Part shown: positions 10,030 to 13,977 of the stretch, one piece after another
Layout of the letters: every line of letters starts with the position of its first letter
Position numbering within the stretch: position 1 is the first letter of the stretch
DNA from: Dimorphilus gyrociliatus
Taxonomy: Eukaryota > Animalia > Annelida
Reading direction: 5' to 3'
Length of the DNA: 64,000 nt
Assembly (NCBI GenBank): GCA_904063045.1
Contig: CAJFCJ010000007.1
Span: 2,487,404 to 2,551,403 of the forward strand
Notes under the pieces: model-generated
Database searches by the model: none
The model's input: only the letters and a program-made list of their open reading frames with translations
What the model was told of the DNA's origin: nothing
Made by a program: the position numbers and the translations under genes

Positions 10030-13000
10030 ATGATGGGTTGCTTTGCGAAAAATAAGGAGGACGAGGACGAGAAAAATCGAAAGGAAGCTAATAAAAAAAT
10101 CGAAAAACAATTGCAGAAGGACAAACAATTGTATCGCGCTACGCACAGATTATTATTACTCGGTTAGTTAGCTGATTTTCGTGCTGTACGCGTGTGTTAT
10201 GCATGTCTTATGATAATCAACTAGTATTTCATATTTTTATATTCATTGTTTCGGTAGGCGCTGGAGAATCTGGAAAATCTACAATTGTAAAACAAATGAA
10301 AATTTTACATGTCGATGGATTTGACGCTCAGTAAGTGTTCTTAGTTACTGTTCCAACATTACTAGATAACCCTATTATCGCTCATCAACCATTGCATACT
10401 CTTTCTTCTTCTGCAGAGAAAAGAAGCGGAAGGTCGACGATATAAAGAAAAATGTCCGAGACGCCATTTTGGTGAGTCATATTGACACCTGTGTAATCTA
10501 AGCCTTTGTAGGTCATTAATTCAGGTGCGCCTAATCTCGTTTATTGAAATCTCTATTATTATGATTATAACGAAATTCGCCTGTGCGAGCTTTTCCATAT
10601 ATAGAAGCTATCTTATATATATTTATATATATATATATATATATATATATATATATATATATATATATATATATATATATATATATATATATAGATAGGT
10701 ATATAAATATATATATATATATATATATATATATATTTATAGATATAAATCCTAAAATGGAATCTACTGTGATCATTCTGTGCAGTTAGATCAGTTTTAT
10801 TGTTTTGCTTTCGATTTGTAATCTGTTGAATATTTGCTGAAGGCTGTTTTGTTGACTGGGATAATATATAATCGTCGATTACTCAATCCTATTCTTGATG
10901 AGTGCAACTATTTTTAGGAGCAATAATTGCAATACCATGTCGCCAGGTGATTAATATCGATGCTTCTGTTATTATCAATTTAACCTATCTGTCCTTTTAA
11001 TTCGAGTACAAATTCTGGAATATTTACTGCTGGCTCTCTTTCAAGGGAAGTAGGCTGATTAATGATAACAGTTGCACAAATCTTTCTTTCCTCTTCTCTT
11101 TTCTCTCATATTTCATTGTATTTCCAAGTCAGTAGTGAAGTTTTGTTTGCTATGGGCGTTGAATGAGTGGTGGAACCTAGATTATAAGAGCCGTCGTTCG
11201 ATAATCAATAAACTATTAACGGACTCGACCCGCTTTATAGATATATATATGGCTTCTTGTACGAAAGTTTGAATTAGTTTATAACGTGTTTAATTAGCAT
11301 TTGTTTATTCATTTACTTAATTATTTAATATATTTTGACAGACAATAACGGGTGCTATGAACACATTGAACCCGCCCATAGCTTTGGAACATCCAGAAAA
11401 CCAATACAGAGTCGACTATATACAAGACGAGGCTAGTAAAGCAGATTTCGATTATCCTCCAGTAAGTAGCTGTTGGAGAAGTAAAGCTTATTACGTACTG
11501 TGGATATTACTTCTTTTATGTATAACCGTGCCTTTATTTTCAGGAATTTTACGAGCACACGGAAGTATTGTGGAAGGATTCAGGAGTACAAGCATGTTTC
11601 GAAAGAGCGAATGAATATCAATTGATTGATTGCGCGAAATAGTAAGTGATGCGATTAATTAATTTTGTTAAACCGCGCGTTGGATTATTATGCGAAGAGG
11701 AATTTGCTAGGCAGAAATAGAATGAAGCGTCTGGTACGATGAACGCCGTCTAGTGGTATCATTGATCAGCGTCAATTGCGGGCGCCATCATTGTAGACCG
11801 TTTGTGTATTTTTGGAAAATGAGGTCGACGGCCAACAATTTATACAATGCATCATCCTTGACCCTGCTTTTGGTCGTAATCGATACTTTCGCTGGTCGAT
11901 TTATATTTTAGGCGCCCAAAAAATGTTCATATAATTACAAAAGCGTATCTTTTTACGGGTGATTTATATTTTCAACAGTTTCCTCGATCGCGTCTCGCAG
12001 GTGAAGCAAAGTGATTATGTGCCATCCGAACAGGTTACCTATTTAAAGAATTAATTCTTTAAAAAATTAGCTGCGTTTGTTAACACCTTTGCCATTTCAG
12101 GACATTTTGAGGTGTCGTGTACTGACGTCCGGTATCTTCGAAACTAAATTCACAGTGGATAAAGTAAATTTTCAGTAAGTGTAAGAAATTCCCTTAGCAA
12201 CGGACAAATTGATTTCGATAAGTTAACGCCATCTACTTTCAGTATGTTCGACGTCGGTGGTCAAAGGGACGAAAGACGGAAATGGATTCAATGCTTTAAC
12301 GATGTGACAGCTATCATATTCGTAACGGCGTGCAGTAGTTATAATCTTGTGTTACGAGAAGATTCCAGTCAAAATCGGCTCAAAGAATCGTTAGAATTAT
12401 TTAAAAGCATTTGGAATAACCGGTAGGGTAAAAATTAGAGATAAACTGGTAAAAATACGTCTATTTTTGACTTTATCCATAGGTGGCTGAGAACGATATC
12501 GGTAATCCTGTTCTTGAACAAACAAGACCTGCTTGCTGAGAAAGTTAAAGCGGGAAAATCGAAGATTGAAGATTATTTTCCAGATTTTGCTCGTTACACC
12601 ACACCGGCGGATGCCATGTCTGGCGATAACAGCGAAGACCCGGAAGTCGTCCGTGCCAAGTTTTTTATTAGGGATGAATTCTTAGTGAGTATCCAGTTAC
12701 GAATAGGCTCATTTCGAGAAAAGTTAGGTTCGCGCATATCGTTAGAGATACATTTTGCTAGTTTTTTTTACCCCGTTTCACGAACATATTTGGAAGTAGA
12801 TCTATAAAATGTAAGTAGCTTGACGGAGATGTGGAATAACGAAAAAATATGGCGTTTACATTTGTTTAACCACTTCTTATAATAAATTTAAATGCAGTTC
12901 ATTAAATAACGACGCTCTCTTAAATTTCTCCTCTAACATTTTCCCTATCAGCCAATAACTCCTAACTAATAAATTCGTATTTGTTTCTTCCAACAGAGAA

Positions 13001-13143
13001 TCAGCACGGCGACGAACGATGGCCGACATTTCTGTTATCCGCATTTCACGTGTGCAGTTGACACTGAAAATATTCGGCGCGTGTTTAATGACTGTCGAGA
13101 CATCATTCAAAGAATGCACCTGCGGCAGTACGAACTGCTGTAA
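10030..13143 (+). CDS. GNAS: G protein alpha-s subunit, canonical isoform (exon 1B + shared exons + terminal exon A)
   Basis: Exons 10030-10162, 10258-10330, 10417-10471, 11342-11461, 11544-11641, 11979-12033, 12101-12174, 12243-12422, 12483-12684 and 12997-13143, all GT-AG and in frame. Motifs [23 protein letters not shown] and TCAVDT; C-terminus [10 protein letters not shown]. Confidence 0.97.
10615..10740. repeat. Interrupted (AT)n microsatellite in a G-alpha-s intron
   Basis: Long AT run broken by a central 'agataggt'. Confidence 0.95.
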
Positions 13144-13360
13144 CTGTTTGTGTAAATAGACAATTTTTTTGCAAACGGCGGCTTCAGGTTGGGTTTCGAG
13201 CGTTGCCAGTGTCTAGTGACGATCGAACTTGGGGGCTGTCGTTTCGAAAGTGATGATTATAAAGTGATGTACGCGAATACTACTACTAATAATAATGATA
13301 ATAATCAACAATAATATAAGAGTAAGAATTCAGAGTAGTTTTTATGGAAAAATTGTCTGA

Positions 13361-13366
13361 AATAAA
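13361..13366 (+). terminator. Candidate poly(A) signal for G-alpha-s terminal exon A
   Basis: AATAAA about 220 nt after the exon A stop and upstream of the exon B acceptor. Confidence 0.4.
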
Positions 13367-13830
13367 AATTTTGACGAATTGTTGAAACCCGCTCTGTTTC
13401 CGCCTTGACGATCGAGTCGGCACCGTCCGCCGTCTTCTACATTTAAGTGTTTCTAACAAACAGTTTGTGTATATGCTCATTGATGTAACGCTTTGTATAA
13501 GTGTGATATATCTTGATTATAGTTAATTTGACGACCAGTTATTGTGGTTTCTATGTATAAATGGATTATATAATAATTCTATATGGCATCTGTAGGACTG
13601 CAGGTGCGCGTGCAATACACTGACAAGTTTCTTTATAAGACGTCACTTTCCAGGTGCCCCCCCCGCGAACGCACAAAAAAAAAGCAAAGGTTAAGTAACA
13701 AATACAGTATTCGTACGAATGTGTTGTCGAAATCGTTCAATTTAGTATTTTTTTTTTGATTTTTATCGGATGCTGTTAAAATTCCACTTCATATAGATTA
13801 GTACGTATATATGTTGCGTTTATTTCGCAG

Positions 13831-13977
13831 AAAATCAGCACATCGGCCAACGAGGAAGAGAAACGCTGTTACCCACACTTTACATGTGCCGTCGACACGC
13901 AGAATATCCGACGAGTCTTCAATGACTGTCAGATAATAATTCAAAGAATGTACCTGAAGCAGATGGGTCTTCTATGA
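13831..13977 (+). CDS. GNAS: G-alpha-s alternative terminal exon B (C-terminus [10 protein letters not shown])
   Basis: Acceptor tttcgcag at 13823-13830, then 147 nt in phase 0: [48 protein letters not shown]. Same length and phase as exon A (12997-13143); 33 of 48 residues identical by manual alignment. Confidence 0.9.

Follow-up and report, generated by a model that had tools for sequence, protein, structure and literature searches.

A second terminal exon in the Gs-alpha gene of the annelid Dimorphilus gyrociliatus and its predicted effect on receptor docking

Introduction

The last helix of a G-alpha subunit (alpha5) is the main key by which a G protein fits its receptors. This helix is essentially invariant in the Gs proteins of animals. 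Here, we describe a single Gs-alpha gene of Dimorphilus gyrociliatus whose ending consists of two tandem homologous exons of 48 codons, termed A and B. The gene lies in a 64,000-nucleotide (nt) stretch of contig CAJFCJ010000007.1, which we call the window and in whose numbering all positions are given. Our preferred interpretation, to which we assign a probability of about 0.7, is that alternative splicing of these exons produces a second, selected Gs-alpha whose effector body is unchanged but whose receptor-docking surface is remodelled. That an isoform carrying exon B exists is seen directly in RNA; it is probably functional.

Several arrangements of this kind have been described. Exons 7 and 8 of the vertebrate GNAO1 gene are tandem-duplicated C-terminal exons that are used in a mutually exclusive manner and give rise to GoA and GoB (PMC5896119). 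As in the Dimorphilus gene, the resulting isoforms differ in the receptor-facing C-terminal part of the protein. However, GNAO1 belongs to the Go class and swaps two exons with strict exclusivity, whereas the Dimorphilus gene is a Gs gene that employs a cassette exon containing a stop codon. In Gs itself, the amphioxus preGNAS gene possesses alternative final exons 12.2/13.2 (Lokits et al. 2018, BMC Evol Biol, PMC5896119). There too, a local exon duplication in a Gs gene provides alternative alpha4, beta6 and alpha5 elements, and its authors also propose that receptor interaction is altered (PMC5896119). The two cases differ in that two exons are duplicated in amphioxus, with copies that are 80-81% identical and one of which is a residue longer, whereas the Dimorphilus gene has one duplicated exon, with 69% identity between the copies and with non-conservative changes at the very end of the tail, among them a Gly at position -3. 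The Dimorphilus exon represents an independent duplication in another lineage, that of an annelid rather than a cephalochordate.

Bivalves provide two further examples. The Mytilus RefSeq isoforms X1 and X2 (XP_052062588/XP_052062589 and others) are identical up to ...RDEFL and continue with either the canonical or a variant exon, the latter being located 14-20 kilobases (kb) downstream of the former in two genomes. This variant exon (L083:77158-77328 and L084:71802-71972) appears in the annotation of several Mytilus species as isoform X1; its alpha4-beta6 loop contains a His/Gly-rich insertion of 8 residues, and it ends in RIHLHQYQLL. In Pinctada imbricata (GCA_033119305.1), an unannotated variant exon is found 960 nt downstream of the canonical one (L086:46193-46339). 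This candidate exon has an AG acceptor, 48 codons and the tail RWHLQQYSLL. A GTAAAT hexamer lies 10 nt past the Pinctada canonical stop; in Dimorphilus, the same hexamer lies 8 nt past the stop and is a donor in use. The order of elements, namely a shared exon ending in ...RDEFL, a canonical terminal exon and a distal variant exon, is the same in Mytilus, Pinctada and Dimorphilus. The bivalve variants also change positions of the alpha5 tail (M386, R389 and E392), but they keep Tyr391, which Dimorphilus exon B does not.

The Dimorphilus arrangement is therefore not new for Gs. The initial annotation of this locus had implied that it was, but alternative Gs C-terminal exons have been described in amphioxus (PMC5896119) and annotated in Mytilus RefSeq, and an unannotated one is present in Pinctada, so that the finding is less novel than first thought. 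It does have the features of the tandem C-terminal exon class: the two exons are of the same length and phase, they are joined to a common upstream exon in RNA, and their comparison indicates purifying selection. Another parallel is offered by engineered chimeras (of the Gq-i5 type; mini-Gs/q and mini-Gs/i1, PMC5398546; Inoue, PMC9005189), in which the effector body is kept and alpha5 is changed in order to redirect coupling, the same combination that is found in B. The chimeras are man-made, however, and the conversion of mini-Gs to Gi1 specificity took nine mutations, whereas B has one of them.

Structure of exons A and B

The last shared exon of the gene (12482-12684, forward strand, as are all parts of the Gs gene) ends in ...GAATTCTTA, and its donor GTGAGT at 12685 serves both A and B. 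Exon A, which encodes the canonical Gs tail, spans 12997-13151 (coding 12997-13143, with the stop codon TAA at 13141-13143) and is preceded by the acceptor ...ttccaacag. Exon B, which encodes the variant tail, spans 13831-13977 (48 codons and the stop codon TGA) and is preceded by the acceptor tttatttcgcag. Both coding parts are 147 nt long and in phase 0, and each has an AG acceptor with a pyrimidine tract in front of it. A search of the window with a Gs protein using tblastn matches both exons (E 6e-24 and 7e-17), and each of them matches the Pfam G-alpha family, with beta6/alpha5 sequence of the Gs type. A and B are identical at 33 of 48 amino acids and at 100 of 147 nucleotides. The coordinates, translations, lengths, phase and 33/48 identity all turned out to be exactly as initially annotated, and the differing synonymous codons that had been remarked upon at shared residues amount to 17 of the 33.

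Splice forms in RNA

Logan RNA contigs from eight sequencing runs were placed on the locus. One run (X5) produced only spurious pieces of 19-24 nt, and the other seven (X1, X3, X8, X2, X10, X12 and X16) contain Gs contigs. Every intron from position 11461 onward is present in these contigs as a GT..AG joint, and the joint 12684>12997, which leads into exon A, is found in all seven runs. Three forms of the 3' end can be distinguished.

In the first form, the 12684>12997 joint is followed by sequence that runs unspliced across B to about 14040 (X1, X3, X2, X12, X16, X8 and X10); the unspliced contigs that start from 12997 reach 13679, 13757, 14040 and 14556. In the second form, 12684>12997 and 13151>13831, both GT..AG, are found on one 214-nt contig of X8 with a depth of 18.8. 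Its second donor, GTAAAT at 13152, is located 8 nt past the stop of A, so that A becomes an internal exon of 155 nt (12997-13151) and B is untranslated. The third form contains the GT..AG joint 12684>13831 and encodes isoform B. It is present in X8 and X10, which come from separate studies. In X10, the depth of the B joint is 9.2 (on a 241-nt contig) compared with 8.5 for the A joint, and in X8 the corresponding values are 7.1 and 18.8. Spliced RNA into 13831, which the initial annotation had proposed to look for, thus exists in two runs.

Hence, exon A is a cassette exon that carries a stop codon, and its skipping gives rise to isoform B. A and B are exclusive at the level of protein only, because A carries the stop; in the mRNA they are not strictly exclusive, as both the 13151>13831 form and the long A transcripts with unspliced B contain the two exons together. 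The interval between them (13152-13830) is a 3' untranslated region (3'UTR) in the long A transcripts and an intron in the form that splices A to B, and its sequence is polymorphic among strains. Downstream of exon B, the RNA contigs of four runs end at 14010, 14036, 14040 and 14042. Judging by these ends, the 3'UTR at 13978-14042 is probably the common 3' end of all forms.

Selection on exon B

The differences between A and B are distributed over codon positions 1, 2 and 3 as 10, 9 and 27. By the method of Nei and Gojobori, the proportion of differing synonymous sites (pS) is 0.75 for the whole exon, which means saturation, and the nonsynonymous divergence (dN) is 0.24; for codons 13-48, the values are 0.85 and 0.15, respectively. 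We also scattered the same number of substitutions randomly on exon A in 20,000 simulated trials. On average, 19.9 of the 48 residues remained identical and the maximum was 29. A stop codon appeared in 75% of the trials, and none of the 20,000 had at least 33 identical residues and no stop. The saturated pS, the dN and the outcome of the simulation together show that B is an old duplicate and that both copies have been kept as coding sequences, as had been initially proposed. On this comparison, exon B is under purifying selection.

Variation within the species agrees with such constraint, albeit weakly. Exon B has no variant across six strains or runs, whereas the 687 nt between the coding parts of A and B contain 12 variable positions (P about 0.07), of which seven are single-nucleotide polymorphisms (SNPs) and five are indels; none falls in exon A or B.

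Changes in the B tail

Residues are numbered below as in human Gs, and conservation was evaluated in a set of 150 full-length Gs proteins from many phyla. Isoform B contains six changes in alpha5 (R380Q, D381I, H387Y, R389K, Y391M and E392G) and also alters the alpha4-beta6 loop. H357, R380, D381, H387 and Y391, all of which are changed in B, are conserved in 150 of 150 Gs proteins, and E370 and E392, also changed, in 149 and 146, respectively. The canonical C-terminus RMHL[RK]QYELL is present in isoform A, and B departs from it at four of the last ten residues. Among the approximately 150 full-length proteins, the Mytilus variant has the sole non-canonical tail. B is unchanged, on the other hand, at the residues that pack against the core or form the nucleotide-binding loop, namely F376, I382, I383, M386, L388 and the TCAVDT motif.

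A comparison with receptor complexes shows where the changed residues are located. Nehme et al. (2017, PMC5398546) list R380, Q384, R385, H387, E392 and L394 as the alpha5 side chains of Gs that touch the beta2-adrenergic receptor (beta2AR) or the adenosine A2A receptor (A2AR), Q390 as making a contact via its backbone, and R347, T350 and Y358 among the contacts outside alpha5. When these contact positions are combined with the specificity positions of the same work, i.e., those mutated in mini-Gs/i1 (PMC5398546), six of the nine B changes outside the loop fall on the combined list (R347, Y358, R380, H387, Y391 and E392; one-sided Fisher p = 0.006). The initial annotation had claimed that B alters the alpha4-beta6 loop and receptor-contacting alpha5 residues while keeping TCAVDT, and both the alignment and the published contacts (PMC5398546) bear this out. 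As the contact residues are changed and the buried side of alpha5 and the TCAVDT loop are intact, exon B would keep the fold and rewrite the receptor face.

The proposed mechanism is as follows. When A is included, the product would be the canonical Gs-alpha, and B would be untranslated, whether attached by splicing or retained in an unspliced 3'UTR. Skipping of A would connect the shared donor at 12684 to B and produce a second Gs-alpha isoform. The guanosine triphosphatase (GTPase), beta-gamma and adenylyl-cyclase surfaces would be identical in the two isoforms because they are encoded by the shared exons, and with switch II and alpha3-beta5 in common, both isoforms are expected to stimulate adenylyl cyclase. 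If B is translated and its coupling is altered, as we infer, it would be a Gs that still raises cyclic adenosine monophosphate (cAMP) but docks to a different or a narrower set of receptors.

The same changes could have a plainer effect. B might be translated and mainly weaken or narrow coupling, or it might alter a property other than the choice of receptor, such as basal nucleotide exchange, Ric-8 chaperoning or membrane residence. Isoform B would then be a tuned or partly uncoupled Gs and not a redirected one. Each of the alpha5 changes replaces a residue that does not vary among canonical Gs proteins, which by itself predicts that the standard receptor contacts are lost. Moreover, the alpha5 helix controls the release of guanosine diphosphate (GDP). 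The role of alpha5 in GDP release has been discussed for the amphioxus isoforms as well (PMC5896119). A plain loss of coupling, however, needs no sustained purifying selection across the whole exon, its new residues included, and we regard this explanation as somewhat unlikely.

Comparison with Gi tails

The initial annotation described B as a Gi-like tail and the protein as a possible natural Gs/Gi chimera, through which a different, possibly Gi-type, set of receptors could stimulate adenylyl cyclase. The Cys at position -4 of Gi/o tails is the pertussis-toxin site, and it is replaced by Ile in Gz. The published six-residue tails are RQYELL in Gs, KQYELL in Golf, KEYNLV in Gq, KDCGLF in Gi1/2, RGCGLY in Go and KYIGLC in Gz (PMC9005189). 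The corresponding tail of isoform B is KQMGLL. It has K/Q at -6/-5 and Leu at -1 in common with Golf, and only the Gly at -3 (H5.24) in common with the Gi family. This Gly is admittedly confined to the Gi/o/z/t tails among the known classes (PMC9005189). However, B has Met rather than Cys at -4, and Leu rather than an aromatic residue or Cys at -1.

The mini-Gs/i1 protein provides a more stringent comparison. Its nine mutations are C379V, R380T, Q384I, R385K, H387N, Q390D, Y391C, E392G and L394F (PMC5398546). B reproduces one of them, E392G. R380, H387 and Y391 are also changed in B, but the resulting Q380, Y387 and M391 are not Gi residues, and C379, Q384, R385, Q390 and L394 are of the Gs type. 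Gi-type residues are thus absent from B at H5.11, 12, 16, 17, 19, 22, 23 and 26. In addition, a swap of the last five residues alone did not switch mini-Gs to Gq specificity (Nehme et al., PMC5398546). The best Protein Data Bank matches of exon B are Gs and Golf, and Gs-type sequences come first in a phmmer search with it. Some encouragement for a Gi connection comes from P0148, a divergent Gs-like protein that ends in MGLF and has five of eight B-specific residues outside the loop. Of the original claim, the Gly at -3 stands, and the rest of the Gi resemblance does not. The chimera label overstates one glycine and is weakly supported, and we consider it unlikely that Gi/o-coupled receptors act through isoform B in this way. 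From its residues, B appears to be a tail of its own kind, a copy neither of the Gi tail nor of that of any other known class.

A broader version of this idea is that isoform B has evolved as a redirected Gs, which responds to receptors, possibly of the Gi/o type, with which canonical Gs does not couple. It draws on the remodelling of alpha5 as a whole: Gly at -3, Met at -4, Tyr at -8 and the loss of Arg380 and Asp381. This, too, strikes us as doubtful. If it were true, the same ligand could raise or lower cAMP depending on splice choice, and the bivalve variant exons together with the genes ending in MGLF or MSLL would amount to a recurrent rewiring of cAMP signalling in invertebrates, so far unstudied.

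Relatives of exon B

In order to find relatives of exon B, its 48 residues were compared by phmmer with 1.84 billion representative sequences. All the strong matches were canonical Gs tails with 65-73% identity, and B-like ends were found in two orphan fragments only, P0148 and P0135. A word-indexed search with exon B of 5.8 billion proteins, with the length window set to 26-84 amino acids, returned no B-like fragment. None of the 80 Gs terminal-exon loci in metagenome contigs of the Joint Genome Institute (JGI) contained a second terminal exon in the downstream sequence available, either by motif scan or by sensitive tblastn, and none was present within 10 kb downstream in Capitella, Lineus and Lingula. 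Full-length Gs searches and cluster listings revealed no close relative of the Dimorphilus protein, the next best identity being 87%.

The two orphan fragments originate from Logan assemblies. The tail of P0148 is ...DCQDMLQRAYMQKMGLF and that of P0135 is ...RQYMRQMSLL. The B-specific states of P0148 are an R that precedes CYPHF, a Q that follows DC, Tyr at -8, Met at -4 and Gly at -3. P0135 has just two of these, the Tyr at -8 and the Met at -4, and its residue at -3 is Ser. Whereas B is an alternative exon, both P0148 and P0135 are whole genes, with only about 56-67% identity to Gs in the part that aligns. When the tail region of P0148 was used as a query, P0148 alone was recovered, and the ESM Atlas returned only generic G-alpha clusters for either protein. 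Their likeness to B may be due to convergence or to selection bias, as both were found by searching with B. The orphan Gs-like genes with the tails AYMQKMGLF and QYMRQMSLL, which resemble that of exon B, are located at L001:1232-1690 and L002:1523-1669 (runs DRR639838 and ERR14173670). In the second of these, the ...RDEFL exon is directly followed by the tail exon, and a canonical exon does not intervene.

The 48-residue exons yield a tree with almost no resolution. One weakly to moderately supported clade (81/87) comprises the canonical exons and the variant exons of bivalves but not Dimorphilus B, and no shared derived residues link Dimorphilus B with the bivalve variant exons. Independent duplications would be the simpler reading, and a single old event is also possible.

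Evidence against a second functional Gs-alpha

A number of points weigh against our interpretation that B is a selected coding exon with a role in receptor docking. The searches of other species, which did not extend to the closest relatives (Dinophiliformia), yielded no orthologue of exon B, and selection is consequently deduced from the comparison of A with B alone. The isoform itself is known from DNA and RNA contigs alone. In both contigs, the B joint has a left arm of only 29 nt, which falls short of the 31-nt bridging rule of the tool; the A-joint contig of X10 has the same 29-nt left arm, the length being that of the overlap expected at a branch of a de Bruijn graph. Five of the seven Gs-yielding runs contain only the A joint. 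Contigs show presence rather than absence, and as assemblers drop minor variants, these five runs say little. Finally, exon B is also a part of the 3'UTR of A transcripts and lies opposite the 3' end of a convergent gene, PARP16, and part of its constraint could in principle be non-coding. Such constraint would not explain the pattern of differences over codon positions.

Taken further, these points would reduce exon B to a non-coding relic within a 3'UTR, with 12684>13831 representing either splicing noise or a non-productive regulatory isoform. The major A transcripts do contain B in their 3'UTR, the B-coding joint occurs in two of seven runs, and the public gene model is without B. Nevertheless, the frame is intact over 48 codons with a stop at the homologous position, and a neutral relic of this age would have lost it. 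Third-position differences outnumber those at the first and at the second position by about 3:1 with synonymous sites saturated, the acceptor is good, and the depth of the B joint in X10 is comparable to that of the A joint. We therefore find a relic very improbable. An artefact, whether from haplotypes that were collapsed, from a duplication in the assembly or from a deletion allele in the genome, is hardly credible and was rejected, even though a 35-amino-acid repeat in an oyster protein (P0193) shows that such errors occur, as A and B are 68% identical in DNA, contigs from several runs are continuous from A through B, and the joints are at exact GT..AG sites with the same donor as for A.

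The oyster protein mentioned above, from Magallana gigas in UniRef, is a Gs protein in which the 35-residue internal repeat is exact; this repeat most likely arose through an error of assembly or annotation.

If exon B indeed specifies a second functional Gs-alpha, the gene offers a ready-made experiment on coupling selectivity: a natural, selected Gs isoform that changes invariant contact residues and keeps the cyclase-activating body. It also suggests that invertebrates with small genomes rely on the choice of exons, and not on the duplication of genes, to diversify their signalling. Annotations can be corrected as well, since the Dimorphilus model is without the C-terminal half and tails and the Pinctada model is without the variant exon.

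Gene model and flanking genes

The shared body of Gs-alpha (10033-12684, residues 1-329) contains the P-loop, the switch regions and the alpha3-beta5 effector surface. Its nine-exon model was obtained by aligning a Gs protein to the window and by using the RNA joints. In addition to the last shared exon given above, the coding exons are located at 10033-10162, 10258-10330, 10417-10471, 11342-11461, 11544-11641, 11979-12030, 12098-12174 and 12243-12421. Together with either A or B, they encode 377 amino acids, and the model is translated without a stop. The very short introns are consistent with the median intron length of 66 base pairs in the published Dimorphilus genome (PMC7854359). The A form is 99.7% identical to the Logan protein P0206, whose 90% cluster includes CAD5117468.1 (DgyrCDS6234) of Dimorphilus gyrociliatus, and the next-nearest Gs proteins, those of molluscs and Capitella, are 82-87% identical to the whole spliced protein.

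The public model DgyrCDS6234 (P0312) is 225 amino acids long, is without the whole C-terminal half and both tails, and fuses two alternative first exons. One of these is an alternative first coding exon (MGCLGSGKDDESKEQENKSKLIEKQLEKDKQK) at 9131-9226 and about 9302-9334 (forward strand), with a small intron inside, which is located approximately 900 nt upstream of the RNA-supported first exon (MGCFAKNK...). Its Ser at position 6 would fit the N-myristoylation consensus. DgyrCDS6234 joins it to a version of the other first exon that is extended in the 5' direction to 9958 (9958-10162). The result is two N-termini in a row, which is probably a mis-model.

Downstream, the intronless PARP16 gene (14018-14914, reverse strand; ARTD15_N and PARP catalytic domains) is convergent on the Gs gene. 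Its stop codon is 41 nt away from that of exon B, so the 3'UTRs of the two genes must overlap, and one RNA contig (X3, 4052 nt) spans both of them. Upstream of the Gs gene, the window contains an intronless gene for a rhodopsin-family G-protein-coupled receptor of 394 amino acids (816-2000, forward strand) and one for a protein of 569 amino acids with RA and PH domains, which is Grb7/10/14- or RIAM-like (4120-5829, reverse strand).

The window differs from the RNA contigs of X1, X3 and X2 by dense polymorphism at 13144-13830 and 14147-14660. Several of the indels between A and B are clustered around a poly-C/poly-A tract at 13656-13680, and about 25 or more SNPs are found at 14186-14660, within the PARP16 coding region. 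This polymorphism suggests that divergent laboratory or wild lineages are kept under one species label.

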